The translations under genes were made by a program, and so were the position numbers. This document shows positions 748-62,500 of a stretch of DNA of 64,000 nt, piece after piece. The stretch's first letter is position 1. Each line of letters starts with the position of its first letter. Location of the stretch: the NCBI GenBank assembly GCA_964057225.1, contig OZ059898.1:14508001-14572000 (forward strand), in the 5' to 3' direction. Source of the stretch: Auanema rhodensis (taxonomy: Eukaryota; Animalia; Nematoda). A model generated the notes under the pieces. The model was not told the origin of the DNA and did not search any database. It saw only the letters and a list, made by a program, of their open reading frames with translations.

Positions 748-792
<45 letters not shown>
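748..792. repeat. (TC)n microsatellite
   Basis: Uninterrupted TC dinucleotide run; explains the SLSLSL stretch in ORF 539..919. Confidence 0.95.
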
Positions 793-800
<8 letters not shown>

Positions 801-3339: not shown

Positions 3340-3373
3340 TGAGAGGGAGAGAGAGAAGGAGAGAGAAGGAGAT

Positions 3374-3416
<43 letters not shown>

Positions 3417-3440
3417 CAGAGAGAGAGAGAGAGAGAAAGA
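3340..3440. repeat. (GA)n compound microsatellite
   Basis: Imperfect GA run of about 100 bp. Confidence 0.9.
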
Positions 3441-4519: not shown

Positions 4520-4592
<73 letters not shown>

Positions 4593-4646
4593 TCTCTCTC
4601 TATCTCTCTCTCTCTCTCTTTCTTTCTCTCTCTCTCTCTCTCTCTT
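4520..4646. repeat. (CT)n microsatellite
   Basis: About 125-bp imperfect CT run; source of spurious ORFs 4491..4673 and 4516..4707. Confidence 0.95.
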
Positions 4647-5168
4647 TCTTTCTTTTAGGAGAGAAACCTTCAAATCATTAGTATTATTAACTTTATTTAT
4701 TTATTAATAGAAAAAATGATACAGTACAGTTCTGAGTATAAAGAAAAAGTTTGATATAACTTTCAATTTATAAGAAAATAATGGAAAAATAGAATAATAT
4801 ATAGTAAATATAGTATAAACTCATTAAATATAATATATATGTACATTTATATAAGATTTATTTATCATTTTTAATGTAAAAAATGAGAGAAAAACAATAT
4901 GAAATATTATGTGAAACATTTATTATGATCATAAGAACCATTTGGTTACAATATATTTGTTAAAAATATTCGAATATCAAGTTAAAAATATATTTCCTTT
5001 GGGTTTTTTTTTGTCTTTGCTTTTCAGATAAAAAAAAAAGATCGCTATTGGTCTCTATTACTAGTTTTAAGAGGGAATTGAAAAAGAGAAACATGAGAGA
5101 GTTTCAAAGAAGGAAAAATAGAGGGAGAGAGGGAGAGAGGGAGAGAGAGAAATAGAGATAGTGAGAGA

Positions 5169-5221
<53 letters not shown>

Positions 5222-11428: not shown

Positions 11429-11705
11429 CTAATTAATTTAGATTACGGTAATTAATATTTATAAGATAATATACTGTACATTTTAAATTTTACAGATTTG
11501 AAGAAGAAGAAGAAGAAGAAGAAGAAGAAGAGACAACTCAACTTATCTTTGTCATTGAGCTTCAACTATCAACTTAGAATCAAAGCTTTAACCGGAGTTT
11601 CAAAGTTCCATATCAAGTTTTTAATAGAAACTGTCCATCTTACAACCTAATGCTGCTTCTGAAGCAACTCAAATTCTCTTTTATTTCATTTTTCAAAGAT
11701 TATTG
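11415..11705 (+). repeat. Left arm of ~290-bp long-range inverted repeat (partner 15618-15899)
   Basis: Reverse complement of 15618-15899 except for 3 substitutions and (GAA)10 versus (GAA)7. Confidence 0.95.
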
Positions 11706-12078
11706 GTGCTTAAACACGATTGACACAATTAATTATAAATTGACCTTTTAAAAACAAATAATTTTTAGTATAAATTAGAAATAAAATAAATTTAATATAA
11801 GATATTGTTAAAAATAATTGTAACAACCATCTCTTGTTTTTTACAATTCTTTTTTTATTTTTTTCATATCCCTCTCTCACTATTCTTAATCTCAATATGT
11901 GCCTGTCTACTGACGTATGTCTTTGTATGTGCCATTTATCATATAGTTACATAAAATTTTATTGTTTTATATTCATTTTTGCATAAAAATAATAATTTTT
12001 AACATAATCTTTCAAATAATCTGTAACATAAACTTTTCCTAATAACACGTGTACTATTTAACTTCGATCCCTTGCGCA

Positions 12079-12150
12079 GCCTCATTGGCTCAGGGGCAGA
12101 GCGTCTGTCTAGTAAACAGAAGGTCGCTGGTTCGATTCCAGCATGAGGCA
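12079..12150 (+). tRNA. tRNA-Thr (anticodon AGT)
   Basis: GCCTCATTGGCTCAGGGGCAGAGCGTCTGT-CT-AGT-AA-ACAGAAGGTCGCTGGTTCGATTCCAGCATGAGGCA; complete cloverleaf followed by TCTTTT. Confidence 0.95.
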
Positions 12151-12193
12151 TCTTTTACGGTTCGTGATTTAAAATTTTGATATGTTTTGCTGT

Positions 12194-13641
12194 TTATCTC
12201 TTTCGGACTCGTGATGTTGATTCCTACAAAAAAGAATTGAAAAACATGTAATACAATCATTGTAGCTTACCACAATTGATACGACGGAAGTTTTCTTTTG
12301 TTTGAAAACGGCAAAATATGCGGTTCGAAAACTTCTGAAAAGATGAAAATTTTGATTTTTAAATAAAATAAAATCTCTTACTTATTAGACATTAATATTA
12401 AAGTATTGTTAATAGAATAACGATATACAATTAAAAGATTCAAATATTGTAAAAAATAATCAAAATTGTATAATGGAAAATGATAGAAATATAGTAAAAC
12501 TCCAGTTGGTAAGAAGATTCCAGCAAAATTAATAAAAACAGATAATTCATTTCTAATAGAACGAATACCATTTGCTCGTACCTTAAGAATATTATGAATT
12601 TATTATTATTTTTGTCTTATGTTTACCTTTATAATTAAATTGACAAATGTAATAATATATAAGAATGAGGCGAAACATACAAGTATCAAAACCAAATATG
12701 AATCAATAAATACAGTTATTTTAACAGCAATTGTATCTTCTAAAATAAATAAGATAATATTAAAATTATTTAACAAAAACAAACCATTAAATATGAAAAG
12801 ATGAATATATGGATCCCAATTATTATGTACATATGATGTTAAACAAAGGATTGTATTAAGTATTCCATATATAACACATACAATTGCAAAAATCTGAAAT
12901 CAAAAATATAGATTTGAAATGATATTTAACTTGATTTTGGTAGATTGAAACACTTGTAATAGCTTATTAATCTCTTGCTTTCACCGTACATCATCTATCA
13001 TATCTCTTTTAACTTCTATAACTTGAAACTTTTAAAAGTTCAAGTTGTAGAGTAGGCGTACACTACCTCTATCCCTCTCATAATCTTCATCTCTCATCTC
13101 ATTTGTATTCACATCTATACATAGAAACAAATTGTATAAAAAAGAAACATACAGCAATAATTGTTGGACTAAATAAAGATGTATAATATCCTGGAAACAT
13201 AACAGCTACAAAACGATTCATAGCTAAAACCAATATTGTTGGATATTCAGCTGTCCATGTTCCGTGAAAAAATGCTCCAATAACCTGAACATAAAAGAAT
13301 AAATTAATAAATATAATTATTCTATTATACCTTATTAGTCCAATATAATTTAGATGGATTATGAAATGATAAAGCTGCAGCGACTAGTTGACAAACACAG
13401 TTCAAACCTTGCATAAAGGCTGCGAAAGCTAGAATTTGGTATGCAGATAACTTTCGGAATGACCTATTATTAAAAATGACCTGTAAAATAAAAAAAGAAT
13501 TAGTAAAGAAGGTAGAAAAACACAAAAAATTACTTGAATGACTCTTATTTGAAATATAATTCCTAAACCAGTAAACGATACGATAAGGCTGTAGAATATG
13601 TAGTGCTGAGTAGTACGATATTTCTCTTGTGGATCAGACAT
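12194..13641 (-). CDS. Serpentine 7TM chemoreceptor, Srg superfamily (Srx/Srt-like), 8 exons
   Basis: Spliced: MSDPQEKYRTTQHYIFYSLIVSFTGLGIIFQIRVIQ|VIFNNRSFRKLSAYQILAFAAFMQGLNCVCQL...|VIGAFFHGTWTAEYPTILVLAMNRFVAVMFP...|...NK|SFRTAYFAVFKQKKTSVVSIV|ESTSRVRKR*. Seven hydrophobic segments and an LAxNRF motif at the end of TM3. Subfamily is uncertain. Confidence 0.85.
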
Positions 13642-15415
13642 GCTTAAGTAATAATATAGATATAAGTAGTTTATGAAGAAGTTATATTTCATTATTAAAG
13701 AAGTAAGTTAAGTTTTAAGTTTTAAGTTTAAAGCATATGTTGCTGTATATGTACATGTATAGATCAGTATGTGTATTCAGATTGAAGATTGTGCATGCAT
13801 ATACATATATATGTATTTTAACATAACATATTTATATTTAAAGATATATGTATGTCTAGAAAAAAAAAGAAAAAAAATAGAAAATTAGATTTGATATGAA
13901 TACCCAAATTAGTGATTTACATATATAGGTACGTTTGTACCAATATAATATATAATATTATACTAATAAAAGTAAATAAGTAAGTAAAAAATGAGAAAAA
14001 TGATTGGATTATTAAAGAAAAGAAGTAAAAATCAAATTATTATCTGAAATGTTTGCAAAACAACAAAAAGATATAAACGTATTGTAGTGATGATAAATTT
14101 TTGTAAGATTGTATGAATATACATGGACATCTACATACATATATCTAATAATATAAGTAAAATAAGATTTTTTAAGAAATTACTGACTTTTAAATTATTT
14201 TATTTGGTAATTAAATTCTTTTTTTTTTCTCAGTAAAATTAGTAGAATAAGTTGAAAAATGGAAAAGAAGGTCATAGAACAAGTTCAAAACTTATTATAA
14301 GATTAAGAGAGAGAGAGAAAAAGAAAAGAATTTAAAGAAATATAGTTAGAGACATAGACAGAGCTTAATATGAATTTTTCTTCTAAAAAATCATTTTGTT
14401 TCTTCTATATTTCTGATATTACTTATATACTTTATATATGATTTATATTGTGGGCGGTAAATTTATATAATATATTCCCAGCTAATTAATATTATTTTTG
14501 AAAAACTTATTTTTCACCATTTTCAAGCTAATTGAAGAGTTTTTTGAGATCGTACTTTCCCATTTAATCATTGTTTCTCTGTCTATGTTTACTATATCAT
14601 AGTATAAATAGATTTATAATTACTATATTTAGTGAATTATAGTAAAAGATCAAAGAAGAATATTGTTTACAATGTGAACAAGACACACAGTTAAGTGAAG
14701 TAATATGAGAAATCATTATCATATAGTTAAATTGAAAATAATCTTCAAATTTAATCAAATAATTATAATTTTTTAAAGAAAAATATATATAAATATTTAA
14801 GTTTTTCTTAAAGATTATATAAATTATTTTAAATATTTTACCTAAAAATTCTTGAAACTTTAGAATTTTGGCTAATTTTATATAAAAGAAATGAAGGTAT
14901 TAGTAATAGAAATTATATTTTGACATATGTCACCAAAAAGATTTAAGAAGTTATATCTTTTTCGAAAAAAAAATGTTGGATAGTATGGTAAATCAAGTTT
15001 GAAAAGTTAAAACCTTTTCATTTTTGTTTTATAATCCATTCAAAATAATGAAAAAAAATGTTTTTTGTTGTCAAAATTAATTGATTTATTATTAAAAAGA
15101 TAAATTATACAATGAACCATATAGACAATTTTCATAGAGAATATCTGTTATCAATGAATTTCAAATTAATTTTTTAATAAAAAAATCAAAAAAACGTTTT
15201 GCAAGAAAAGTTGTATGAATGATCAATTAAACTTCAAGAACTATAATACTATTGTAAAAACTTTGTATGAGCTTGAAACAACCTGAAAAACATTTTCAGT
15301 TAACTTAAAGTTTTAAAAATATATTTATCGAATAGTTTTTAAGATTCATAAGGATATAGGGTGAGAGGTAGAACACGTGTTATCCACATCTCGGACATGT
15401 ATGTATAATGTGTAT

Positions 15416-15419
<4 letters not shown>

Positions 15420-15462
<43 letters not shown>
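15420..15462. repeat. (GA)n microsatellite
   Basis: Pure GA run. Confidence 0.95.
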
Positions 15463-15465
<3 letters not shown>

Positions 15466-15617
15466 CTTCTTAAAAAATTATTCAAAGATATAAGCTTATA
15501 AATAATAAATGTCAGCATGTTATTTGCAAATATTATTAAACAATGAATTTATTAGAAATTATTAGAAATATTTACAAAGTTTTATAAATTTAACGAAATA
15601 CATATATAACCAATCAT

Positions 15618-15899
15618 CAATAATCTTTGAAAAATGAAATAAAAGAGAATTTGAGTTGCTTCAGAAGCAGCATTAGGTTGTAAAATGGACAGTTTCTATT
15701 AAAAACTTGATATGGAACTTTGAAACTTCGGTTAAAGCTTTGATTCTAAGTTGATAGTTGAAGCTCAATGACAAAGATAAGTTGAGTTGTCTCTTCTTCT
15801 TCTTCTTCTTCTTCAAATCTGTAAAATTCAAAATGTACAGTATATTATCTTATAAATATTAATTACCGTAATCTAAATTAATTAGCTAATTTATGAAAA
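15618..15899 (-). repeat. Right arm of ~290-bp long-range inverted repeat (partner 11415-11705)
   Basis: Base-by-base reverse-complement match to 11415-11705. Confidence 0.95.
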
Positions 15900-17635
15900 T
15901 AATATATTTAACTGTGTTTATCATATATTCTGTACAAGATCTAAAAGATTTTCTTCAACATTTCTAAAAATACAAAAATTCTTTTTTTATCTCACATTGT
16001 TGAGATTAATATTATTTTTTTTTTGACAAATACCATTCATTTCTAAGTATAATCCAAAGATCATGTATACATACTGTCATATAGTTTATTAATCTTAATT
16101 AATTATTTTTCTTTTGAAATAAATTATTTCAAATTAATTTCTTTAATTCCATATATGCTCTCTACTTTCTTTCTTTCTTTTTTTTTTGAAAAAATGTTAA
16201 AGTTGTTATCAAGTTTCAAAGTTTATTGAATATTTTTTGTTATGAAAACATAAATGTTTAACAAGTTTTTAAATAATAATTATAAAAGATTTTAAGATAT
16301 CCAAATATAGTATAAAGTACTATACTGATCTCTGTTAATCTGTACAACTTAATCAAATAATGTTTGAAACATTAGTTTTTAAATAAAAAAAGAAAACATT
16401 TTACCAAAAACAATATCAAAAATGAATTAAAGGAAAACGAATATCCGATTTGTAAAAAACTAATAGTTCTATTGATATTTGAAGTTTAAATTCTTTGAAA
16501 ATTGTATCAAAGGATTGACTTATTTGGATCTCTGGATATCTCTTTCGTCTAGATCTTGTTATTCAGAAATCAAAAACGATGATGATAAAAGGAAAAACAT
16601 TGGTGTTAGAAGGTGGATAACAAGAACAATGAGAAATAATAAAACCATAGAAGTTATTTTAAACAAATCGTTTTACATCTTATTGGCCAAAAATAAAGAA
16701 AATTTAGAAATCAAAAGATAATTGGTATAATCAGATTTGTTTGATTTCAAACAAATTTCTCGCAATTTCTTTGGCATTCTCAACATTTTTATCCTTAGAA
16801 AGTGAAGTATGGATCTGAATATATGGCAATCGTTTGGAGCTAGAAGAACTTTCAGAATATGATTGGATGCTCCAGAACATCCGAATCAAGTACATCCAGT
16901 TTTACTATGCGGACACAACAACTAAGCATAATTAAGTCAGCTTATCTTATATTGGAAAACTATTGTTATATCTGATTTTCATGTTTTATTTTAATAAATT
17001 TGATATTTAATTATATTTATAATAAATAAATAAGATATATACTTCCTTATCAATTATCAAAAATCCATTAAATTACATTGTATTGCTTCATTTTAATTTT
17101 TGAACAATCAACGATTTTATTTTCAAATTTCAGGAGATTAATAATTTTTATTTTTTATTTTAATTATTCTCCTGTCTCATTATCTTTTTCTCTCCGAAAC
17201 CTATTACTACGGCTCCCCCTTCTCTCTCTCTCTCTCTTGTCTCTCTCTCTCTTCCTCTTTAAAGAGATAAGAGATAATATATCTAATAACCTATGTTGAA
17301 CTATTAATGATGTAACATGTCAACTCTTACGCTACGTATATCTCAAATACTTTCAAAACTTTTGTATTTATAGAAGAAAATTTTGATTTTTATTGTTTAC
17401 TAATGTATATTTATAGTATAAATACATATGTATGTTTCAATTTTATTCTTTTTTTTTTCCTATAAGTTTACACAGATGAGATTCTGTGATATTCACATCC
17501 ATTTTTCCCGCTTTCTTTTTTTTTTGAAAATTCTCTTCGACTAACATTAACCAAAAACATTTTTTGAATACTTATATGATTATGTTTTATTGAGAAAAAA
17601 ATAAAATATAAGGGACAAAAAAATTACAAAAGATT

Positions 17636-17717
17636 CGATCAGGATGAGATTCGAACTCACGCGGGGAAACCCCAATGGATTAGCAGTCCATCGCCTTAAC
17701 CACTCGGCCACCTGATC
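17636..17717 (-). tRNA. tRNA-Ser (anticodon GCT)
   Basis: Reverse complement GATCAGGTGGCCGAGTGGTTAAGGCGATGGA-CT-GCT-AA-TCCATTGGGGTTTCCCCGCGTGAGTTCGAATCTCATCCTGATCG; long variable arm. Confidence 0.97.
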
Positions 17718-17854
17718 ACATGTTTCATGGAGTTATCATTTGCTCAATTGTAACAGCCTAACTGATAAGAACTCTGGACTGTTTTATTAGTTTTGAAATG
17801 TTTTAGAATACAAAGAATATCATAGATTAAGTAATAATTCATGAAATATCATAA

Positions 17855-18074
17855 TACAGGGTGGCGCATAAGTAAGTTCACCTTTCGCTTTGATACAAGC
17901 TTTCAGTCTTCGCTCTATTGATTCAACCATTGCCCGTAGATATGCTTCATCTATTTTGTCTCATGCTAGAAGTAATTCTTGTTTAAGATGGTCAGCAGAT
18001 TGAAAGGTTTTTGTCTTGATTCCTTCTTCTTCTTGACATGACCATACAGAGAATTCCATAGGATTCAAGTCCGG
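17855..18074 (-). mobile_element. Tc1/mariner-superfamily (Tc1/maT-like) transposon fragment: transposase C-terminus plus one terminus
   Basis: Minus strand translates PDLNPMEFSVWSCQEEEGIKTKTFQSADHLKQELLLA*DKIDEAYLRAMVESIERRLKACIKAKG, with the (S)PDLNP catalytic motif and RL..CI.AKG tail. The conserved W is replaced by TGA at 17961-17963. The fragment ends in TA+CAGGGTGGCGCATAAG, a Tc1/mariner-type terminus with a TA target. Confidence 0.9.
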
Positions 18075-18370: not shown

Positions 18371-20560
18371 TTATATTATTTCTGAAGTATCTCTTCTAAT
18401 TATATTAATTGCTTGAACTTGAATAGATTTTGAAGAATTGCCAAAATATTGTTTTCGAATATTCCTGAATGAATAGAGCTTCTTCTAGTACATAACATAA
18501 TCTTTCAATTACTCTTACATCTATCTATCTATTTTCAAATTAAAAAAGAAATTTTAACATACCCATTAAACATTAATAGAAACATATTTACAAAAGCAAA
18601 ACGACATAGAACACAAGTATAAAATATATAATTATATAATTGTGTTGATGATAATGGATGATGAAATATGTATAAAGCTATTCCAGTTGTTATAAAATTT
18701 GTGAAAAAGTTGAGTAAAAGTGATAATTCTGCTTTAACTGAGAAAATACCATTTTCTCGAATCTTAAATATATTCATATAAATTATTATTAATTTTCTTA
18801 ACTATATATGAATATCTTATATTCTATAGCTGAGGATATGACAAAGAGGCGTCTTTTCACATAAAAAGTCAAAAAAACTCAAAGTTTTCAAACAGGCTGT
18901 TGAATATATTCTCAATGAATTTTTAGAAATTTTGAATACATTTCGGAACAATTCTTTTTCCAAAATTATCAATGTATCAAATGGTCCCGCGCGGAAAAAG
19001 TTCCAATAAACATAATATTTATTTATTTTTAATATATTATATATTACCTTTTTAGCTAAATCAAAAAATGTTATAATATATAAAAATGATGATATTATAA
19101 CCAATAATGGAGCAACTCGTTTATCCGTAATTAGTATCATATCAAATAGAGGCGAATCACCTTCAAAATATCAAAAATTAAAATTATTTGATAAATAAGG
19201 AAATATATATAGAAGATATAAATATATATATCAAGGAAATAACTATACAAATTGAAATTTTAAAAATAAAAATAAACAAATTATAGAAAATCTTTTGAAT
19301 AAACAGATACAGACCTTCGAAGTACCATGTAGCCTGAACAGGATCCCAAAAATACGAAGCATTAGGTGTGAGCAAGATAATGAAATTAATTATACCATAT
19401 AGATAACATATGCTCAATGAAATCTATAAGGAATTAACTAATATTATAGTTAACTATACCATATCATATAGTTTAGGAAAATTTATTTATTTTTTGATGT
19501 TCAATTTAAAGAAAAAGATAATTGTTTCTCTTTTATCAAGGAAATAATTATCAAATTGTTATATATTCATATGTTTTTTTGAGGAAAAATGTCATCAACA
19601 ACTTACATTTTCTTTGAATTTTTTTTTTCGAAATTACATGTATTCATTCACCAATTTATATAATTTATAATAAATAATTTTATAAAAATATTCAAGTTTT
19701 TCAGGGATTTTTCAATCACCCAACAATCTTTCATAAAACTTTTTCAAAGTAAAATAATTAAAAGAAAAAAATAAATAAAATACATAATTGGATTCAATTT
19801 CTTATGGAAATCAGGAAAAATAGTTATTTGTCAATGAAACACAACTTCCAAAAATACTCATATTACACCATCCTCATCCCAAAATGCTGTTTCATCACGT
19901 TTTAAGTTTGAAAATTAAAGAAAGACAACCTTAAATGAATTATCCTCAAATATATAAGGAAATAATTTTGGTAAAGTAATAACAGTTAAACGATTTAATG
20001 ATAATAAAAATAAAGTTGGGTACTCAATTGTCCATATACCATGAGAAAATGCTCCAAAAGTCTGAAATAAGCTAAGCTAGGTTAGAACTTTATCATATAA
20101 TTTGATCTAAACATGCCTTATAAATATAAATATTAGAAGATAAATTAAAGAATGGAAATAGCATTGATAAAAATTGATTTAAACAGTATAAACCTTGGCA
20201 CAAAGCTACATGACCCAATAGCTTATAAGCTACAATTTTACGTAAATTTTCTTTAGTTTCAATAGTCTGAAAAATTATTTATCGAGGAAGTTTTTTTTTC
20301 AGAATTTTTAAAATTATTTTTGGAAATTAATTGGCTTGACACTCAACATATTCAAGGAATATCATGTATGTTTCAACATTTTTATGAAGTGGGGGAAGAA
20401 CATTTGATTAAGAAGCTTCTTATCTTACATAGATTAATCGAAAATGTAGAAGAAAACCAGCGAGACTGATCATAAAATAAATTCCATAAAATAGATAATG
20501 AAGTAATGGATATTGAACTAATAATGGATCAATTGATGTAACATCAATATAGCTATTCAT
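18371..20560 (-). CDS. Serpentine 7TM chemoreceptor, paralogue of 12194-13641, 7 exons
   Basis: MNSYIDVTSIDPLLVQYPLLHYLFYGIIFMISLAGFLLHFRLIY|TIETKENLRKIVAYKLLGHVALCQGLYCLNQ...|TFGAFSHGIWTIEYPTLFLLSLNRLTVITLP...|IRENGIFSVKAELSLLLNF...|NIRKQYFG...SEII*. Its six intron positions match the first six of the paralogue; intron 2 has a GC donor. Confidence 0.85.

Positions 20561-23015: not shown

Positions 23016-23091
<76 letters not shown>
23016..23091. repeat. (TC)n microsatellite
   Basis: About 75-bp pure TC run. Confidence 0.95.
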
Positions 23092-27648: not shown

Positions 27649-29564
27649 TCACTGTGTTCTATTTCTACTTGATTCATTCGAATGAATTTTTTGTCCAAAT
27701 ATGAGATCTCGAACTGTTTTACGTAAAACGTTATTGAAAGTAATAGTAACACTTATATGAACAAAGAATGCACATCCAAAACTAAGTAATGCAAATTGAA
27801 AGAGATCTGAAACAAAATTTTTATTTTTAAAAATTAAAAAAATCAGAAATTACGTTTATTGATGTGAATATAAATAGATAAACATACAGCAAATGGAGCG
27901 ATAAATAATAAGGATAATGTTAGAAAAACCTTAAAAACAAAATTTCTTTTTTCGGTTATAGTTGAGGGTCAAAAGAAAATCTTTGATGTGATAATGATGA
28001 TCTCGTTCACTATGCTATTTCCCGCTCTTTCAATACTATATAAGGGATAACTGGAGGCTTAAGTCATGTTCTTCTACTGTGTGACTACTTTTATAAGTCA
28101 AATTTTTTCTTTTTTCATGAGAATCGGACTTTGATCCATCTCTTCTTTACGAGTTATACTAGTATTATACTAATAATTTGAGGATTTTTCTTTAATAAAG
28201 ATGTTTTACACAACAAAAACTCAATATTTTATTCGCAGTACGCCAAAAACATTACATTTTAAATTTTTTTTTAATAATTTTGTTTACCTGTGCTGATAAT
28301 GTTTTTAAAACTGCTAAATGATATTTAACACTTGAACTTGACATATTTTGCTTTTTTCGAATTTCAAAAACTACATTAAAAAGACAGAAAATGACAATCT
28401 GAAATTGTACAAAAATTAAAAATAGACACATACAATACTGTCTTTCTTGAATTTCTCAAAAACTATTCGAAGAATATTTTTTATTTTTTTTATAAACATT
28501 TTGAACTTATTTTTGTATTATTTTCTTTTTTTATAAATTTGAGAAAAAAATTTTGTGATTTTTTAAAAATTTTGAAATTGTTTTGAATGTCATCAATAAT
28601 TATTGAGATCTTTCTATGTTTCTAATAAGATTATATATGTATATTATGTATTATATACTTATAAAATAATAATATATAATATTATTAGTATTTTTTAATA
28701 TAAATATATCAAAATTATTCTAAAATCTTCAAGTTTAAATGGAAAAATGCTGGTATGTTAGAACTTTGAATTGAGAACTTACGAAAGCAGCGAGAAATAA
28801 TAGAAACAGATAATACAATAGGTACATTAATCCAGAAAGTTGTTGCATTGGAAGATAAACAAAAAATTTCTGGTTCAATATTTCAATATCAGATTCCGTA
28901 AACTATAAAAAATTCAATTTTTAATCGAAAAAATTAACAAAAATCAACATTCAGTGGATGTGTACGTATATCAAAGTCTGATAAGATATTAAGAAATAAT
29001 ACTGGCGATGGAATAGTATAAATTAAAAATAACGTTACGTAAAGTATAGGAAAAGCATGAGGTGTCTGGAAAAAAGAAAGTTTAAGAGAGAATTCTAAAC
29101 CTATACAGATGATACATTGAGTAGATGATTAGGTCCCGATACAATCTGAAGTCGATGAAGGAATGAGATGATGACAAACATGCCAAAAAATCCGAAAAAG
29201 AAGCAGATTGAAGCATATGCTGTATCACATCCTATAAAGGATATGAACTGATGACGTTCACAATATATAAACGAATATCTAAGTTCAGAATAGAACTTCA
29301 ATAAGACGCACCAAATCATGTCAACGATGTAAAGAAGTATCTAATAAAGTTCTAAAAATTATAAATATTTTAAATGAAACATACTAATTGCATATATATA
29401 GAAAATTTGTAATCTCTAGATTCTGGTGTTGGAGGTGATTTTATAAAAATCAAAATAATAAGTATGAAAGCTATTGTATTAGTAATAGCTATAACATCTT
29501 GAAGAATTTGATACGTACGATGATCATCTTTATAGCTCATAATAGGATTTAAATCGTCAGCCAT
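27649..29564 (-). CDS. Serpentine 7TM chemoreceptor, Str superfamily (Srh/Sri/Str-like), 7 exons
   Basis: MADDLNP...TIAFILIILIFIKSPPTPESRDYKFSIYMQL|ILLYIVDMIWCVLLKFY...SFLHRLQIV...|...FEIRKKQNMSSSSVKYHLAVLKTLSAQ|VFLTLSLLFIAP...VTITFNNVLRKTVRDLIF...*. The KSP..YK, F.HR, MS....KYH....K.L..Q and TM7/helix-8 patterns fit the Str superfamily. Confidence 0.8.
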
Positions 29565-30199
29565 TACGATATGATTATATGAATTTATGGCATATTCTAT
29601 AAATAATATATAAAACTATAAAATTAATTAATAAAATTAATATTTTAAAAAGATAACTACAATTAGCAAGAGGAATGAAAGAAAAATGATTGAATAAGAA
29701 ATATTTTTGAGCAAAAAACATACAAATCTGTTGTAGCAGAAATAGGCTAAAACTTTGTTTTTTTTTAATTCAAACATGATGTTCAATTCTTTTCGAAATC
29801 CTGCAACAACTCTTGTTTCGAGATGTAAGATGCCCGATCCGACTGTTTGCTACAAATATTTTAGTTCCGCATATGACATGATGATTACAGGTAGCTAAAA
29901 ACAGTCAAAGTCTTTTGAAGCGAAATAGTTTGGGTTTTCGGTTTTTCAGATCTTCATCTCAATATTCCATTTAAGCGAATATTTTTGATAAGAATAAAAC
30001 AATTTTTATATAATAATGATATCTTGGAAAAATAAAATTTTATGTCAATTAACTGAAGAATTATACTAAAGATACGATATACAAAAATCTAGATAAAATG
30101 AAAACTGATAAGAGAATGAAAATGAAACAATATAACAAAAAATATAAACATAATCCTTTTTTTCAACTCAAGTTTTGATATTAATGAACTTGCAGCATA

Positions 30200-31213: not shown

Positions 31214-32843
31214 ATGTCAAGCGAAGAAGAGGTTTGATAATAATTTTTTCATTTTTCTTCTGAAAACTTTTTTTATTTCAGACAATTATTGACCCAATTT
31301 ACGTAGATTTTGATTATACGGTAGCTTCATACGATGAAGTATGTTTGGGAGATATTTCATGAATTAAAGAATTAACTTTCTACTTTTAGCTTTCGGAAAG
31401 ACATAACATTCTTCTTAAAATTTTGCGTGAAAAGGTAACATGAAATTTCAAAAAATTTTTTTTTATTTTTAAAGAAAATATTTGAAATTTTAATTTAAGA
31501 CTAACATTATAACTCTTGAAGATTGCTGGAGAGTATCAAGAGAATTTAACAGTGAACAATTTCATTTTAAGGTTAGTTTTCAGGATATTTATCGATTTGA
31601 TATTAAATATTTCATTTAATAAAACTTTCATTGTTGACAAAATTTATTAAAAATCTTATTTTAAGATGTTGCTAAGGATGGAGCAAATACGTTTACTAGA
31701 CCCCGAAATAATGGCGCAAGAAGGTGTAAGTTTCAACTTCAATTAGCTTTTCAAACAACTTTTTTTGGCTTAAATTTAGTGGAAATTGAAGATTCAAGTT
31801 TTCAAGTTAATTTTTCTGCTTTTATGTTAAAGCTTTTACGTTTTCGCTTTCAGGTATTTAGGATGATACAAGAAATAACAATTTTGGAGAATGAAATCTT
31901 AATTCGGCAAGGGCAAGTAAGTTTTAGGATGAAGTGAGAGTTTTTGAACTTTGGCTTTGACTTCAGTTTCAACCCTTTTTTGTTTTTTAGATGCAAAGAG
32001 TCTTTACTGGCCTCGATCGCTTTTTCGCGATAAATTTGCACAGAGTGAGCTGTCTTTCAAATTTTTACAGTTTAAAGGAAATCAGATCATAATTTCTATT
32101 TTATTTGCAGTATCCTCGAGGATTGGCAATGAGATTTCCCTCAGCACCAAAACGAACTCCTTTGTTTGAAAACTTGGGAACATTGGTTGATGAGTATGAA
32201 TATTATTTCATACTTTCTGGTGATCACTACAAAAAAGAGGAAGTTGAGCCAAAAAATGTTTTCTTTTTCCGGAAATTGACTGGCGTAAGTTTTGAATTTA
32301 GAATCGGTATCCTTGTCAATTTCATATTCTACTTTCAGTGTCAGATTAAGAACTTATTCGAAAAAACTAAAAAGGATATATACCAAGTGTACAATGATTA
32401 CAATAAATTTAGCTTTGAAAAATGCATGAGAGTCTATGTAATTTTATAATTTATTATTGATTAAAATCAATTTTTTTACTTCAGAATAGAAAATATCTGA
32501 AATCAAAGCGTGATTTCAGAAGCATGTCATTCAGAGATATCTATCAAAGCATTGAGTATGCTCGTGCCGTAAGTTTTTTTCGAATTAGTCTAAAATATTA
32601 TTTTCTTCATTACAGGTACTAGTCGCGCTTTTCTGTACTAGACAAAGCTCAGGAGGAGTATTAGTTACCTTCCTTGAAACTGCTGATATAGTTAGTGTAA
32701 CCAGCAAACGTGATTCTTTGATTTTGAGTAGTACGGGCGTGCACGATAAATGTGAAGTTTTCTTGAGAGGTGGCCATCTTTTTGCGAAAGATTTCGCACA
32801 CTTTTTGACCAGAAACTACCATTTGGTAATTGCTTCTGAATAA
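31214..32843 (+). CDS. Unknown-family protein, array member 1 (~315 aa, 11 exons)
   Basis: Continuous spliced ORF MSSEEE|TIIDPIY...|VFRMIQEITILENEILIRQGQ|MQRVFTGLDRFFAINLHR|YPRGLAMRFPS...YYFILSG...NVFFFRKLTG|CQIKNLFEK...Y|NRKYLK...YARA|VLVALFCTR...NYHLVIASE*. All introns GT-AG and phase 0. Confidence 0.8.
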
Positions 32844-33016
32844 CTTTTTTTTTTCAACGGAAGTGATGAACATTTTGAAATTTTTTTCCTGTAATTATAA
32901 AAATTAATTAAACTATTCGATATGTATATTCTGTACTTTTTCTATTTAATGTTTCAAATATATAAACAAGACAATGAAAAAGATACAACAATAATTTAGT
33001 TCCAAAAGGTTAAAAA

Positions 33017-33089
33017 AAACTTTGATGACAGCTAGGGGTCTTCAGGAAATGTTTTTTGACAAACTTTGATGACAGCTAGGGGTCTTCAG
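33017..33089. repeat. Perfect 29-bp direct repeat, two copies
   Basis: AAACTTTGATGACAGCTAGGGGTCTTCAG at 33017-33045 and 33061-33089. Confidence 0.95.
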
Positions 33090-33359
33090 AAATTTTTTAT
33101 TTAATAAAAATTCTTTAAAATATAAAAATTTATTATAAAAGAATATCACAAATAATAAATATAGTAAACGATCAAACGTTTAGAAATTTGTAAATTAAAC
33201 CTAAATTTTTGGATTGACGCCAATAAGCTTCATATATATCGTAATATGGAAATCGTAAATATTGATCAGTCTACTAAAATATTATTTTTTTACAATCTTA
33301 ACTGTTAGATACTATTATTATTTATGAATTATTCCTCTGTCTTTTTAGAAAAGAATAAA

Positions 33360-35332
33360 ATGACTGAAACGATAAAAGTTGAAATTGATGAAATTGAGGT
33401 AAGCTTTTTGTATTTTATGTATATAGTATAAACTTAAGAATGAACTTGAAAAAATACTTTATTTCAGAACTTTCAGTTCTTCAATGATTTTGATAAATTT
33501 AGAAATAGTGTTATTCGAAAAGTAAGTTTAGATTAACACTACTTTCATGGAAACCTTTCTGTTTTAGTTTCGAGTTATGGAAACGCAATTAAATATACTA
33601 CAAATGGCTTCATTCCAAAAAGATAATCAAGTAAGTATTTGTTTGAATTTAAAAAAAAATTGAAGCATGCAGATGATCTAACCTTTCGAGATTATTCACT
33701 GAATTATCTTTTTCAGATTTATGAAAGAGAGACTCGTAACGCTATATTACAAAAACGATTAATCATAAAGGAAGAAGAAGTGAGTTTGAATCTCGAAAAA
33801 TTGTTGAAGTTGAGATTTTTTCGGGAAACTTGAAGCTTTTTCTTGTGTCTCTGTTTTTGTATTATTATTTTTTTTTGTTTTCAGATTCACGAAAAAGACT
33901 CCAGATATTCTATCTTAGAGCATGAATTATTTCAAAAACAAGAAGACGTAGGTTTGAATCTGATATTCAACAGTTTTAGAGATGATTTAGAAATATTAGA
34001 ACATATTCTAATTAAAATCAAATTTTTTTAAACGAACCTTATTTCCAACTTTTTTCAATATTATCTTGAGTTTTATTTTCAGATTAGAGATTTGGAAATT
34101 CAATTAAATACCCTTAAAAGTGAAATAATAGAGAAAACGGAGAAGGTATGCCTTGAGTAGCTTCAAGTACAATTTCAAACTATCTGTCTTTTAGATCAAA
34201 GAATTGGAACAAAAAGAACTAAATGTTGTTGAAGAACCACCAAGCAAGGTTTTAACTATTCTCTATATGTCATTTTATGAAATATTATTTGAGAAACCTA
34301 ATGTAGAAGTTGAAAGTGAAACAAATTTCATCGAATTCGTTGATGAAAATCAGAACAATCTTGAATATGAGGTAATATCTTTGATTACAATTTTTCGTTA
34401 CTCATTTATACTTACAAAAACAAATTTTACTTATTTTGAGTACTTTCTACTTAACTTTTAGTTTTAAAAGCAAGGTTTGAATATCTTTTGTTTCTAGAGA
34501 ACTTTTATAAGGCCTTTGGAGCCTGAAAGACGTTTGGTAGGTACTTTTCAACCGAAACATATAAATCCAGTTTATTTTAGAGACCTAAAAGTTGGTTTGT
34601 AGAGTTTACATCAACATGTGCCATGAGATATGCACGTTTTGAAGAATTGGAAAAGATTTTAGTTGATAACAAAATGTATTTCTTTGGTGTATTTAATAGA
34701 CATAAACACATTACTTTCCCTCAAGATAAGATTATATTTCTGAAAAAGCTTTCTGGTGTGAGTTTCGAGGAAGGCAGTCATCTATTCCAAATTTAATTTC
34801 AGACGCAGATTAAAGAAATATTTAAAAAAGTCATTAAACGAATGGAAGAATTAGTTGGTAACGGTTTAATACGATCACATGCATTCCTTGAGAAATATGT
34901 AAGTTTATGATTTATAACCGTTAAACTTAGATTTTTATTAATTTTAGAATGCCAGATACGCGAATGAGCAAATAGATGATTGGAATGTGGTAATTGATCA
35001 AGGCGATTCGTTTAAGGATCGTCTAGAAAATGAAAGCAGTGTTGTTGGAGTGAGATTTAAACAAGAATTTCATATAGTTATGTCTTTTCTTTTAGCTTTT
35101 AGCCACAATGTTTGGTAAATCAGGAACAAAAGGTCCAGTATTTCTTGTTGAAGACCGTGAAGATGTCTCATTCACTTATGGTTCAGGCTTTTACCGAGAT
35201 AGAGTCACTATTCTGAATAAATTATCTAATGGGGAATTGAGACTTTCTTTCAATTATACTCTTAAACATTCATCTTCCGTTAAAGCATATTTGAAAGAAA
35301 ATTATTTTGATAATAGAGAATTTACATTATGA
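33360..35332 (+). CDS. Unknown-family protein, array member 2 (~375 aa, 12-13 exons), long coiled coil
   Basis: MTETIKVEIDEIE|...four 63-nt exons...|RPKSWFVEFTS...MYFFGVF...KIIFLKKLSG|TQIKEIFKK...Y|NARY...VVG|LLATMFGKS...NREFTL*. The last exon overlaps ORF 35108..35332. Confidence 0.8.
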
Positions 35333-36289
35333 ATATTGTTGAAAAGTGGAATGGTTAGCGTTGTAATTATTTGTTTTTGTTTGCTGTTGATTTTGATAAA
35401 TTTTAGCTTTAAGGTGAATTTTGCTGAATTTAAAACAGAACAGCTTAAGTTATGCAGAAATCATGAATTCAAACTCAAGTGCAAAAGTTTGGTTAACACA
35501 TTTTGTTAGTTTGGAATGTTTGATTTGAAAATTTTCTAAAACTTGGGGAAGAAATATTCTTAATTTTAATTTCGATCTTTTCATATAATTAGAAATTTAC
35601 CGCACATAAAGAAAACAAACTTCTCTCAAAATCATTTAGTTCCTTAGACTTATAACTTCTGTCGATCTTCATTTACTGCCAAGTAATAGAAATTTGAATT
35701 TCGTAACAACAATTGATTTGTAAAACTACACTATTTCAAAACATTTACAAGTAGTAACCATTACAAGCATATATCTATAACTAACACTAATTGCTTCAAC
35801 ATGTTTTAAAAACTTTTCTATTTTCCGTTTACGATAGGAATGTTATTTCCTTGAAAATCTAAAACTTAACCACAAGTAGGAAGGGTACTGTGTTACTTAC
35901 TGTTACTCGGATGCCTACTAGATATTCACTTAATTCGTTTTGTGACAACTTCAAGTTGTAATTACCATATTAAGAATATTTTTTATCATAAAAAAATACT
36001 TTGCCATAGTACTACCGTCTGATTAACAAATGAACTTCAAAAAAAATGATCTTCAGAAAGAACCAATAAGAGAAGATAAATTTGAATTTCGCAAACTTTA
36101 CCTTATATGATAGTAAACTTTACCGAAATAATGCCCTACGTTCAGGCCACGCTGATTGGTTCAAAAATAACTTGAGCTTAACTCCTAATTTATTCATTTT
36201 AATATCCTAATTTCTTTTACACGGTTGCTATTTTTTATTTTGCCAATTTTTAATTTTTTAAGATGTTTTTAACTTTTTTTTTCAGAACC

Positions 36290-37663
36290 ATGTCTGATCG
36301 TATGATAGTTAAAGAGGAATCTGAAACCATTGATGAAGTATGATCGTTAATTATAAGTTCGGTTATACAAAAAGCTTCATTAATTTAAAAATTTTTTTAT
36401 TAATTTTCAATTTTTAGAATTGATAATTAATTTTTATTAATTCTTTAAGTTTTGGATTACAGGCTCGTAAATATTCTGAATCTGAATGGGAATTAGCTAG
36501 CATATTTGAAAGATATAACGAAGTAGGTCTTGATGTATTTCTACTTAAGAAACACTTTTATTCGGATTCTCCGAGTTTATGCTTTAGAACAAAGCTCTCT
36601 AATTATTCTTTAATTCATTATACTTGTATTTAGTTCGAAGATATTGAAGAAGCAGGAGTAAAATATGCTGCTCGGAATTTACGTGAACCTGTGCGTTCAT
36701 TACAACTTACTCTTTTATGAATAAATATTTTAGGAAAGCATGTTCCATGGTTTAGACCCTTATTGCCCAGGAAATGTAAGTTTCATTTTTTTTTCAGAAA
36801 ATCATTATCCTTTTTCAGATTGCTCAAACTTTGTTTGTGAAAATATGCTCAGATCTAAGGCTCAGATCTATACTTATTGAAAATATCACAGACGCTTTAA
36901 TTGATGAAAATGAATATCATTTCATTATACTCGAAGACGACCAGGATGAAGACCTGCTTTCAGAAAAACAAAATCTTCTTTTCTTAAAAAAACTAACGGG
37001 GGTACATCTCGAGTTGAAGAGAAACAACTGTCTATATAAATGTTATTTCCAGAGCGAAATTAAGGATATGTTTGACACAGTGATCTGCTGTGTGAATGAA
37101 TTATACCAACGATTCAATAAACGTGATTTTTACCTTCACGAATATGATTTAAATTGTTTTGAAGTATTTTATGTAAGTTTATATTTAGTATTCTAAGGGT
37201 TGTTACTATATATTCTTTAGAATAGGTTACATCCTACTAACAAAATGAAACTCATTGATCTGTATGCGCACGAATTTCGTAGCATGGAAAACGTACAAGC
37301 TTGTTTGGAGGATCTAAAAAATGCTATTGGAGTGAGCTTTTTTTCAATTATTCTACAACAATATATAATCTTAAACAGTTGCTGACGTGGGTGTTTGGTA
37401 CAAAAAGCCGTGATGTGTCTATGGCTATCCTAGGAGCTAACAACACCGTAGTACCTGTCTATGGTTCTGAATCGGTGTCTTTGAAAAATCTGTTAACAGG
37501 AGATAAAACTGTCATTCTATCCAAACTTTTCTCGTGTTCAGAAATGTTTTCTGATTCTATGAAATTGGAACGCTTTTTAAAAAAGAATTCTCATTATTAC
37601 GAATTAATATTGTCAATTATTGAAATGGGCGATCACATAGAAACTGAAATAATGTATTTATAA
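36290..37663 (+). CDS. Unknown-family protein, array member 3 (~300 aa, 8 exons)
   Basis: MSDRMIVKEESETIDE|...|ESMFHGLDPYCPGN|IAQTLFVKICS...YHFIILE...NLLFLKKLTG|SEIKDMFDT...FY|NRLHP...NAIG|LLTWVFGTK...NSHYYELILSIIEMGDHIETEIMYL*. Confidence 0.8.
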
Positions 37664-38496
37664 GCACTGAATTGGTTTTAGTTTATTTTTGTTAAAAATA
37701 AATATTTTAAAAAAATATATTTAACTTTAAGTTTGTTAATATCAAAGATTATTACTTAGTAAATATTGTTTTGAATGTCTCTTTCTTTTTATTCTTTTTC
37801 TTATTATTTTCTTATTCATACATTCTCTTTATTCAGCTCTTCCTCCCAAGCTGTCAAAATCATTTTGCTTCGTGTTGTCGTGTAGTATTTTTCTTTTAAT
37901 AGGTTATCGACTCATCCCTGTGCTAACAATTAACCTTACTTGTAATCTCAAGTTGTAAGCTCATTTTCTATAAAAGTGATGGTAGCGTCATAATACTTTT
38001 GTTGGACCGTCGGCGACAGTAGGTAAACTGCGGACACGTTCTTCTTACTGACAGTATCAGCCAACTGTCCTCTCCCACATCATTGTTGGAGTTGTACCTC
38101 ATTCTTTTTAGCCGGTAGTATTATGAATAGTGTCTGTCGCTCTAAAGATCTCGGTTTCCGTGTTATTCTCAAACAGTATAGCATTGATTTGAATTCCTTA
38201 TTATAGGATTAATTAATTAATTATTTCCTTATTCCGACCCATTATCACTGATAATTTTCTTTGGCAACAACTGTCCTAAAAACCTCTCTGAAAATCTCTA
38301 TTGCGGTCTTTACACGAAAATCCTGTACGCTAATTTAAATATCTTAACCATCTTTTTTTTTGCTTCTTCCTTTCTCGCACTTTTGGTTAACATAAGTTTT
38401 CTTAAAAACTTTCCCATATATAGATGGTTCATGCTTACAGTATTTATTTGTTTATCATAATATTTTGAATAATTATAAACAATTTTTTTTCTTAGC

Positions 38497-40027
38497 ATGG
38501 CGCCTGGTCGTGGTCGTGGAAGGCGTAAAAAAGAAGAAGTAAGTGCTCCGGTGATAAGTAAGTCTAAGAAAGAAAGTGTTAGTGCTCAGGAGGTAAGTTG
38601 GTTTTAAACTTCTGTTAAATTTTTTTCATTAATTTCAATCAATTTTTGATCATTTCCTTACTTTTTAATTGTAGAGTATTCAAGAAAATATTCCGTGTAT
38701 ACAGTTAAAAGATATTTTACGTGATAGAGAAAGCGAGGTGAGCCTTGATTCTCTTCGTGATCTGAGTTTAAGAAGTTCTTGGCTTTGATTATTCCAATCT
38801 ATGTTTGGAGCAAAGTTATCTAATTCTATACATGTTGGGTGTATTTAGCTCGGACAATTGAAAGAAGAACTTTTTAACCTAAAGAGTGAGATTCAAAGAA
38901 AAGATGTCATTGTAAGTTTCTTCACGATAAAGCTTTATGGGCCTATATAAAATTTTCAAAGCTATTTTTGTCTAGACCAATTACATGATATCCGAAATGA
39001 CTACCTTGAGACTGAAATGGTCTAAAGTAGAAGCAGATGTAAGTATCTATTAAGCTAAATGCTGTATGAAGTATCATCTTAGCATATTTTTCATACATTA
39101 ACACTTAAGCTTGTAAAATTACCTTTTTCAGGTTAAACAATCCTTTCGTGGTGTCAATATGATGTACAATGAGAGGAATGTGGGTATTTTTTAAATTTGT
39201 TTCCTGTCTTTAGATCATAGTGTAAATTCGCTGTTTCTTTCAGCTGACACAGGCTATGCGTGTGAATTTCCCTTCCCCATCTGATATTGTCGTTAGATTT
39301 CCACTTCTTGAAAAAATGAAGGATTCTCTATATGGTGGAAGAGACTATTTCTTTATTATATTTGATTATAGTACGGAGAAGAATGGCATTATCTTTTTTA
39401 AAAAGCTGACTGGCGTAAGTTTTGAGTACAAGTGAAACAGCGTGCTCTTTAAACTTAATTTCCAGTCGCAGATTAGGGAGTTGCTTGAAAGAGTCAATGC
39501 TGTGCTGAATCAGCTATTCGATTGCTATGGCCAAGCCTATACTATGTTCACAAACATGATATATGAGGATATAGATAAGTTTGTTAACTTCTATGTAAGT
39601 TCCAGATTGATATTCCAAATTGTTTTATTTTTCCTTTTTTTTAGAATTATAAATTTGCTGCTAAGAAAATGAGTACATATATCCTCAAAAGAAGAATCAA
39701 TGTTGTAGAAAACGAAATGTATCGAAAAATTTTTGAGGACATGGATAATGCTGTTGGGGTATGATTATCTTCCAATTATTTGTAATATAGTGTTCTTTAT
39801 ATCAGATATTGTGTGCACTCTTTGGTGCAAAAGAACACACTCTCTCAGTTGTCTTTATTGATGCCCAAGATCAATTAGATGTTGTTTATTCGATGGAAAC
39901 AATTTCAATGAGAAATACTATAAAAGAACAAACAACAAGGATTTTTTCAATAAATTGTTGTGATCATGTAGATTTCTTGATGACATATACGAAACATAAT
40001 TGCCACACTTATCAATTATCTTTGTGA
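38497..40027 (+). CDS. Unknown-family protein, array member 4 (~320 aa, 9 exons), basic RG-rich N-terminus
   Basis: MAPGRGRGRRKKEEVSAPVISKSKKESVSAQE|three 63-nt exons|VKQSFRGVNMMYNERN|LTQAMRVNFPS...YFFIIFD...GIIFFKKLTG|SQIRELLER...FY|NYKF...NAVG|ILCALFGAK...NCHTYQLSL*. Confidence 0.8.
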
Positions 40028-42685: not shown

Positions 42686-55105
<12,420 letters not shown>

Positions 55106-59371: not shown

Positions 59372-59378
59372 AGAGAGG

Positions 59379-59429
<51 letters not shown>

Positions 59430-59436
59430 AGAGAGA

Positions 59437-59517
<81 letters not shown>

Positions 59518-59520
59518 AGA
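59372..59520. repeat. (GA)n compound microsatellite with a G8 interruption
   Basis: About 150 bp of GA repeats. Confidence 0.95.
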
Positions 59521-62500
59521 GCCGAACGGAATTTAGCAGTTAGTATGCCTGTGTGGATCATTTATTCTGGTACAGCATTGAACAAATGCAAGAAAAAAAG
59601 CTGAAATGATGAAAAGTTTGAGCAAAACGAACGAAAGAAACGCCTCAAAATCTGATTTTGCAAAATATCTGTTGATGATCTGCCTATTACTGGACGAACA
59701 TAGGACAACATATCGTGTCCCCCAAATATGAGGACATATGTATGTAGTTAGAGATATGGAGCACAAAAGCTGTTAAGGGAGAAATATGCCCTAAGGCATC
59801 AGTCTCTTCTTTTCATTCAGTACTTCTCTTTCTCTCTCTATCTTAGTATCTTTCTCTCTATCTCTTCTCTTTCTTTAGACACAAGTTTTCCAATATTCAG
59901 CCAAATTCAGGATTATCGGCAATAAAGGATAATGTGGTTCAGTTTCTGTTCCATTAGACTATTCCGAAATTTATGTTTAAATTTGATGACAGGGGTGATA
60001 AAGGCAACCATAAATGCGGCAAAAAAAAAGAAAAAAAAACGATGAAAATGAAGAAAAAATTCTGTTGAATTCCAAAAGTACTGGGTGAGTTCAAAGAGAT
60101 TTCCCATATAAATAGCCTGAGCTAACAGGAGAGAGAGGTTCTACAAAAAGTATAAAGATGGGTAAAAGCTGAAAAGATGAAAAACGAAATGAAAAGCTTA
60201 GGTAGGAGTAAGGTAAACACAATTAGTCATCAGACTCTATTCATATGCATATGAAATGTTTCAGAAAAAAATGTTGTGTGGAATATTTAGGAGAGAGAGA
60301 TGATCAAGCTCTTGAAGTTGGAAGCAAAAGCTGGAATTGCAAAGAGCAGTTCATTTCCCATTCAGAAAGGAAGAGCCATGCAACAGTAGTCGTGATAAAT
60401 GCTTGGAAAGCTGAGATGTGAATATGAGCAACATCGGTTGTCTCATGTAAATCTAGAAGATTGAAGGGAGGAAGAAGAAGAAGAAGACCAAATGGCAACA
60501 TGTTCTCGTCAACGAATGGTCCTTCAACTACCGCAGTCAACTGATTGCTAATTACCCGTCTTGACCGGAAAGGACAACGCCAAGAGAGACGGAAAGCCCG
60601 CACAGCCGGACAATGTGTCGAAACAAGTGCAATGCGAGAAGGCTAACGACAAGCTAAGTATCTAAGAGCTATCTATAGAAAATGAAACTTTCATGACAAC
60701 TTCATTTGAAAAGAAGAAAGAGCATACAAATATTATCAAAAGTTTGACAAGCTATCATGGAAATCAGCCTGATTTTTCCTGCCAAAGAAGGAAAACAAAA
60801 TTCATTTTGAACTAAGTCGTTAAATCAATGTTGTGAAATTAATTATTATAAACGTACTTTAACAAACTATATACAGAGGAATTTATGAATTAAGCTTGAA
60901 TGCCATTATGCTAAGCATCATGTAGAAACTGCGTAATAGTCTCACGCAGAAATATGAGATCTGAGATGCAGGGCTTGAAGAGGGAGGAGGGGGGGGGGGC
61001 AGGAAGGGTGCTAGAAGGGCTTCGTGGTGGGTGAAGAGAAAGTCTTGAAGCTCACTACTTCGTTATAAAGAGAATGTGAAAATGAATAATCTAGATGAAA
61101 GCTGTAGACACATGAAGCAAGAGGCAGGCGAAGCTGCCATGATCAGCAGACGATTTGTAAATTAGAGAACAAGGAAGTTGTTGTTATTAAATATTTTGAC
61201 ACAAAATGTCATTAAAACATGGAATAGAATATGCTACTGTGTGTATAAGATTTATAAATTTCTAATTAGTATAACTATGTGTTTTTGTTTATTGACTATA
61301 ACTTAACTATATGTATATAACTAGAGATAGATTTAAAAATTAAAAACGAGCGAATAAATAAATAATATTAGAAACATAACCTATAGATCTTATGTGCATA
61401 TAATTAAAATTTTAAAACAAATAATTTAAAAAAAAGAAAAAAAAGAATAGTAAATATTAATATTAATATTGTTTATAGTTTCAAAATTTAAAAACAAAAA
61501 CATAAATATATATAAATATATTATAAAACTATAATATTATTTTTAATATTAAAATTAATTATAATAAAGCATTTTGCAACCGCTCAATATATCAACTGAA
61601 TGCTAAAATGAATTGAGACTTGAGATATACTCAGAGCTAAGAATGATTTACGTGAAAATTAGCATACTACGAGCTATGTGTGAGGCTGGGTGTGTGTGTG
61701 TGTGTGAGCCTTATGATGATGTGAGAAATGAATATAACAAGAGGTTAAATCTGTGAATAAATGAAGAGAAACAATTATTTTACTATGCACATACATACAT
61801 ACATGTAAATTATAATTTATAATAATAATAATAAAGATTATCATATGTATAAGTATGCTTATAGAATAAAAATTATAGTTTAACTACGAAAAAATACGCA
61901 CCAAAGCAGTGTTGCAATACGCAAATTATCTGAAAACTAAAAGGAAAAACATTTCTTTCTTTTCTGTTTAAAAAATAAACAATTAAAATTAATTATGATT
62001 TCAATTTTTATTTTGTTTGCAATGATTTTATTGGCAATCTCTCAATTTCTTAGACCAATTCTTCAAGTTTTCTTCTCTTTCTTTTGAAAAAAAATTGTCT
62101 TTGGGACATGCTAAATAAATTTATTTTTTTAAAAGCAGAATTATTTCCTACGTAGTCTGGAAAGTTAGAAAAAAATCTTTTCTCTTGAAAAATAGCCAAA
62201 TAAGACAAAAAAATAAAGAGAAATAGAAAGGGTTCGATGCCTATCTTTAGATATTTTGTATTGTATAATTAAGCTGGTTCAGGAAAATGGCTAGTTCTAT
62301 TCCGGATCACGCACATCCCTTCTATCTTGTTGTCACTCAGCATTTTTCGTTCCAAGCAAGAACACTACTATACATATGCATTAGAAGTTTGCATTAAAAT
62401 TTCCTTTTTCAGCTAATTTGCTCCGAAACACATATTTAAGGAAAAGCTTGATTTAGTATTGTTTCGCATCATCTACTGCCGTACCTCATATACTGCTACG

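Follow-up and report, generated by a model that had tools for sequence, protein, structure and literature searches.

What kind of proteins are encoded by the head-to-tail array of four diverged paralogues on contig OZ059898.1 of the nematode Auanema rhodensis (assembly GCA_964057225.1), and does the C-terminal region that they share belong to any described family? We analyzed a 64,000-nucleotide window of the forward strand of this contig (positions 14,508,001 to 14,572,000; all coordinates below are those of the window), in which four intact + strand genes, here called A to D, lie within 31214-40027. Their structures, homology, copy number, age, and intactness, together with a heptad pattern in their N-terminal halves and the lack of a known domain, are established directly. 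It is highly probable that they form a real, selected, single-locus family with an unrecognized domain. On balance we favor a fuller reading, in which four anciently duplicated protein-coding genes encode a helical stalk of variable length followed by a C-terminal domain without detectable relatives and act as dimeric adaptors; the adaptor mechanism taken by itself is a tentative proposal.

A preliminary description of this stretch had reported four same-strand genes 0.5 to 1 kb apart, and this layout was confirmed: the distances from each stop codon to the next ATG are 516 (A to B), 957 (B to C), and 833 nt (C to D), and every gene yields an intact, multiexon spliced model. The models were read by hand, base by base across 31214-40027, and a script verified their frames, splice dinucleotides, and single terminal stops; they comprise 8 to 13 exons each and contain no internal stops. 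All introns are of the GT..AG class and 43 to 136 nt long, with acceptors mostly of the form ttt(c/t)ag, which is the nematode type. Codon-position GC content in the exons follows the coding-type order GC1 > GC3 ≥ GC2, and overall GC is 0.31 to 0.36 in exons versus 0.23 to 0.30 in introns. A strong acceptor (polypyrimidine tract plus AG) is found 1 to 11 nt 5' of each ATG, with no upstream exon seen; an acceptor site just before the ATG is typical of trans-spliced nematode genes, and the mRNAs of A to D may well be trans-spliced. Some 5' boundaries are ambiguous but in frame in either version: 34249-34293 in B is possibly retained, exon 3 of C ends at 36657 or 36690, and exon 1 of D ends at 38538 or 38592.

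Alignment of the four spliced proteins over their C-terminal parts, a check that the preliminary description had proposed, demonstrates that the last five exons of A to D are homologous and in register, with four intervening introns at the same positions, all of phase 0. The motifs of the five common exons are, in order, an F.G exon, ..Y.F..F.KL(T/S)G, x(Q/E)I(K/R)..Y, N...(A/V)(V/I)G, and.L...F(G/C)....N.H. The register of the pattern first reported therefore stands in all four genes, with two corrections to its details: the "AVG" exon of A ends in ARA, the V/G being read-through into the intron, and B reads TFIRPLE and has no F.G. In this exon alignment the best-conserved exon, ..R...E..L..Y.F....F.KL(T/S)G, lies at 32111-32284 in A, 34581-34757 in B, 36819..37001 in C, and 39244-39414 in D, and the last exon,.L...FG.K ... 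N.H.Y followed by the stop, at 32616-32843, 35096-35332, 37379..37663, and 39806-40027, respectively (all + strand). Pairwise identity is 23 to 32% over the shared ∼210 to 246 amino acids. BLASTP E values, computed at a database size of 8e6 (a proteome-sized search space), are 9e-19 for C-D, then 3e-8, 1.5e-7, 1e-5, and 1e-3, and up to 0.3 for A-B, and on these comparisons we judge the similarity to be far above chance. All four sequences have the same residue in 16 columns (S, R, E, L, Y, F, F, K, L, G, I, Y, N, L, F, and N). Most of these are hydrophobic core positions, the remainder being one each of S, R, E, K, and G and three N residues; there is no invariant D, H, or C, no column holds Cys in at least three copies, and one holds His in at least three. 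A test for an internal repeat found none between the first and second halves of the domain.

The exon that ends in KL(T/S)G has some further local features. A conserved VSFE past its donor was considered as coding sequence and rejected, there being no alternative donor in frame in all four copies. The intron that follows is stop-free and a multiple of three in A (32285-32338, 54 nt) and C (37002-37052, 51 nt), where its retention would add 17 to 18 residues with the frame kept; the corresponding intron of B and D is interrupted by a stop. The segments 32259-32295 of A and 39389-39425 of D, which span the junction of the KLTG exon and this intron, share 81% identity over 37 nt, including GTAAGTTTTGA at the start of the intron, the counterpart of which is GTGAGTTTCGA in B and GTACATCTCGA in C; this likeness is probably donor consensus plus chance.

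To place the family within the genome, we scanned all 180.9 Mb in six frames with profiles of the KL(T/S)G exon and the last exon, which matched the four copies at E values of 1e-23 to 1e-32 and recovered no further significant copy outside the array, the next match being a single one at an E value of 7. The family is confined to a single locus of this genome, and the genome-wide copy count that the preliminary description had left to be made is four. Nei-Gojobori pS among the copies is 0.59 to 0.79 and pN is 0.44 to 0.54, with pN below pS in every pair. Because synonymous sites are saturated, the duplications are old, relatives must exist in sister species, and dN/dS among the four copies is not estimable; no DNA-level repeats link the units, which likewise indicates that they are not recent duplicates. 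The description of the family as fast evolving does not hold up, since its low identity is accounted for by age and a saturated pS leaves no rate to be measured. The accompanying suggestion that the genes are kept intact by selection is better founded: all four are intact over 8 to 13 exons although they diverged very long ago, a pattern that speaks for purifying selection.

The N-terminal halves had been called unrelated, which is only partly true, as exons of 60 to 63 nt that encode heptads are common to them in different numbers. Exons of exactly 63 nt, equivalent to three heptads, occur once in A, four times in B, and three times in D, and there is in addition one 54-nt exon in B and one 60-nt exon in each of A and C. 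Gene A (31214..32843; 11 exons, 317 amino acids) has an acidic N terminus, a 60-nt and a 63-nt helical exon, and the shared C-terminal domain at 31991-32843 (exons 31214-31231, 31282-31338, 31390-31434, 31500-31571, 31666-31725, 31854-31916, 31991-32044, 32111-32284, 32339-32437, 32485-32568, and 32616-32843). In gene B (33360..35332; 13 exons, 375 amino acids), the four 63-nt exons and the 54-nt exon at 33568-34248 encode a predicted coiled coil of ∼100 amino acids ahead of the shared domain at 34498-35332 (exons 33360-33398, 33468-33521, 33568-33630, 33717-33779, 33885-33947, 34083-34145, 34195-34248, 34294-34371, 34498-34536, 34581-34757, 34803-34898, 34948-35049, and 35096-35332). Gene C (36290..37663; 8 exons, 290 amino acids) has a short acidic N terminus and one 60-nt helical exon, without a long coiled coil, before the shared domain at 36734-37663, and an AATAAA is located 34 nt past its stop (exons 36290-36337, 36463-36522, 36634-36657, 36734-36775, 36819-37001, 37053-37172, 37221-37331, and 37379-37663). 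Gene D (38497..40027; 9 exons, 304 amino acids) begins with the basic sequence MAPGRGRGRRKK, followed by three 63-nt heptad exons at 38675-39038 and the shared domain at 39132-40027 (exons 38497-38538, 38675-38737, 38849-38911, 38976-39038, 39132-39179, 39244-39414, 39466-39594, 39645-39758, and 39806-40027). The N-terminal tails are thus acidic in A, B, and C and basic in D, and no signal peptide-like start was found in any of the four proteins.

The heptad pattern is clearest in B, where hydrophobic a/d positions continue unbroken through five exons and the first residue of each exon is position a; a/d occupancy is 0.63 versus 0.43 in shuffles over 102 amino acids (P < 0.0005). In D the pattern also runs across the exon joins (63 amino acids, P = 0.03). 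Periodicity of a/d positions over several heptads, taken as the criterion for a coiled coil, is therefore present in B and D; it is not significant in A, and C has one exon of 20 amino acids. As predicted from these exons, the main difference among the paralogues is how many three-heptad modules they contain.

Does the C-terminal domain have relatives elsewhere? Joined spliced proteins were used for the paralogue alignment; the Pfam, PDB, library, word, and folding searches took pieces of single or adjoining exons. Ten such pieces gave no Pfam match at any curated cutoff, and at E values of up to 10 only SelB_WH1, CRR7, DUF4144, and Pox_I6_C appeared, all weak and unrelated. Two profiles, one spanning two exons and one of the last exon, found nothing significant among PDB sequences (best E value, 0.17). 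The two-exon profile had zero matches among 1.84 billion representative proteins, a library evidently without the proteins of this species, given that there was no self-match; this blank result means that there are no close relatives in public protein sets and is not proof of uniqueness to the species. Word-index searches limited to proteins of ∼70 to 240 amino acids gave no match for either of the longest two open stretches in gene C, and a metagenome scan for the KLTG pattern yielded 269 matching stretches, with no relative among them. The preliminary observation that no known domain could be recognized agrees with all of these searches. AlphaFold models of exon pieces have pLDDT values of 46.9 and 46.3 and hint at an order of strand-strand-long helix followed by strand-strand-strand-helix, so at low confidence the domain seems to be mixed alpha/beta with long helices. 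In a language-model atlas, the nearest neighbors of the last exon are retropepsin-like fragments (0.81 to 0.83, below the lead level of the tool), and all top named neighbors of the KL(T/S)G|xQIK region are KH clusters (0.80); a score of 0.80 is reached by one-third of shuffled proteins, and both leads fall inside the noise range.

Taken together, A to D most likely represent, as judged from their sequences, a lineage-restricted family whose members are dimeric, are not secreted, and serve as scaffolds or adaptors; we infer their expression, dimerization, binding role, and localization. Each protein would carry a short charged N-terminal tail, a stalk built from the 60- to 63-nt exons, and the C-terminal domain of ∼210 to 246 amino acids. 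The stalks would associate as parallel coiled coils into dimers or oligomers, a tendency that would be clear for B and D and minimal for C. In such assemblies at least two C-terminal domains would be displayed together, each serving to bind a partner and not to catalyze a reaction. A to D would differ in reach, through stalk length, and in their tails, and the RGRGRGRRKK tail of D may denote a nuclear or nucleic acid-associated form. We propose an adaptor because A to D, with a parallel coiled coil on the N-terminal side and a recognition domain after it, resemble in overall plan the proteins whose coiled-coil stalk carries a globular head at the C terminus, such as TRAF/MATH, TRIM-SPRY, Spc24/25, and Csm1. 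Membership in these families is not claimed: A to D have no MATH, SPRY, or RWD match in Pfam, and identification as TRAF/MATH or TRIM-SPRY proteins was rejected after no C-terminal exon matched MATH or SPRY. A binding module fits better than an enzyme because S, R, E, and K are each invariant only once, too little to suggest an active site, and there is no invariant D, H, or C.

Several points weigh against the adaptor reading. Splicing and translation of the four genes are deduced from sequence alone; the searches for relatives rested on exon pieces and on a library without the proteins of this species; and the AlphaFold models of exon pieces reach pLDDT values of 46 to 47. There is little or no significant heptad signal in A and C, so the stalk idea does not extend to every member, and four sequences at 25% identity that lack invariant catalytic-type residues may still belong to an enzyme.

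An unlikely but substantial alternative assigns the C-terminal domain, as a strongly diverged member, to a family already described, such as the PALS-type regulators, a longin/roadblock-like or RWD-like adaptor, or a degenerate KH domain, in which case the array would be an ordinary expansion. Duplicates this old imply a family older than the species, so relatives are expected, and the reliance of the searches on exon pieces also favors this view, as do the strand-helix order of the low-confidence models and the weak KH leads; against it stands the lack of curated Pfam, significant PDB, or representative-library matches. The PALS (pals-) clusters of Caenorhabditis elegans are similar in being nematode-specific tandem arrays of highly diverged ∼300-amino-acid paralogues without a biochemically defined domain, but A to D have four members at a single locus and a modular coiled-coil stalk, and no PALS similarity was found either by Pfam or by the two-exon profile against the 1.84 billion proteins, searches made with exon pieces and no PALS-specific model. 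For KH domains, including degenerate GLD-3-type ones, the stretch F(L/F)(K/R)KL(T/S)G-x-Q-I-(K/R)-x-(L/I) is loosely like the "IGKGG..IK.I" signature. In the KH fold, the GXXG loop sits between two helices, whereas here GXXG lacks its first glycine and K-L-T-G follows a predicted strand rather than the required helix; KH_1 was unmatched at E values of up to 10, and the 0.80 atlas lead is a score that shuffled proteins also obtain. We thus rejected the KH identification.

We consider it improbable that A to D constitute a set associated with germline or meiotic chromosomes, like the him-8/zim cluster or the coiled-coil proteins of the synaptonemal complex, perhaps tied to X segregation or DNA elimination in Auanema. 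The him-8/zim-1/2/3 cluster of C. elegans likewise consists of four same-strand tandem paralogues with diverged N termini and a conserved C-terminal part. The HIM-8/ZIM pairing-center proteins have C-terminal zinc fingers of the C2H2 type, and these defining fingers are absent from A to D, which have no conserved Cys/His pattern and were rejected as pairing-center proteins. The coiled coils of B and D, the basic tail of D, and the unusual germline chromosome behavior of the host species (10.64898/2026.08.27.747507) would suit a meiotic role, but no similarity to known meiotic proteins was found, and the argument amounts to an analogy of layout and species biology. More speculative still is the idea that the ∼210-amino-acid region is a new domain limited to Auanema-like rhabditids, with stalks that would serve as graded-length spacers in a germline chromosome process of this trioecious, DNA-eliminating worm. 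Least probable by far, and already largely refuted, is that the genes came from transposons or retroelements, for example, as gag/protease-like genes, and are domesticated or decaying, a reading that the retropepsin-like neighbors of the last exon would favor but that conflicts with their subthreshold score, the absence of a conserved D-T/S-G motif or Pfam RVP match, the lack of transposase, reverse transcriptase (RT), or integrase domains in the ten exon pieces and of terminal or inverted repeats flanking the units, the restriction to four copies at one locus, and the many short spliceosomal introns at conserved positions, so that both the retropepsin/gag-protease and the transposable-element identities were rejected. 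The sequence does not discriminate among the PALS-like immunity, meiotic, and selfish-element roles named in the preliminary description, with no similarity to any of them found and no transposon features.

The surroundings of the array were also surveyed. A shared promoter motif was rejected as AT-rich background, the only candidate being AAAAACTTT, which lies at variable distances from the ATGs and occurs 14 times in the window. At 33017-33101, 260 to 340 nt upstream of the ATG of gene B, a 44-nt unit is tandemly duplicated (95% match), and its 25-nt core, TTTGATGACAGCTAGGGGTCTTCAG, has no other occurrence in the 181-Mb genome; this is possibly a local regulatory duplication. Four tRNA genes lie within 10151-18000 (Ser-AGA, Thr-AGT, Ser-GCT, and one at 10974-11056 with an anticodon unreadable by ARAGORN and an Rfam score of 61 bits), in a genome with 19,554 tRNA loci (10.64898/2026.08.27.747507). 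Hydrophobic multiexon open frames resembling serpentine chemoreceptors are present at 12609-13707, 18538-19423, and 29104-29849 (- strand); the sole such stretch with a Pfam match is 13102-13383 (Srx, E value of 2e-4; Srt, E value of 2e-3; both under the curated cutoff). A multiexon gene at 44770-47409 (- strand) has a glutamine-rich stretch and a coiled-coil-like exon at 45518-45892, and its tested pieces had no Pfam match. Many (TC)n/(GA)n microsatellites of up to 76 copies (749-5218, 23016-23090, 48691-48767, and 59372-59521) yield long false SLSLSL open frames on both strands. The soma keeps a gene-rich, low-repeat compartment (10.64898/2026.08.27.747507), which the window resembles, because its repeats are microsatellites only, it contains none of the eliminated satellites, and it holds a serpentine-receptor exon and tRNA genes.

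The germline assembly of A. rhodensis comprises 180.9 Mb and 11,943 genes; for 85% of these, homologues are reported from C. elegans, Ascaris suum, Oscheius species, or humans, so that ∼15% of the genes of this worm are orphans like A to D (10.64898/2026.08.27.747507). The lack of a match to any known family is common for lineage-specific worm gene families, and an orphan class is expected; A to D are accordingly a genuine but ordinary lineage-restricted nematode gene family, whose unusual points are limited to a fold without assignment and an exon-modular stalk. If the domain is truly new, it would add one more uncharacterized nematode-restricted family, and the array neatly illustrates how paralogues can be set apart by entire exon modules of three heptads. 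Their host has three sexes, inherits its X chromosome in an odd manner, and eliminates DNA on a massive scale, and a link of the family to the germline, if there is any, would be of interest.

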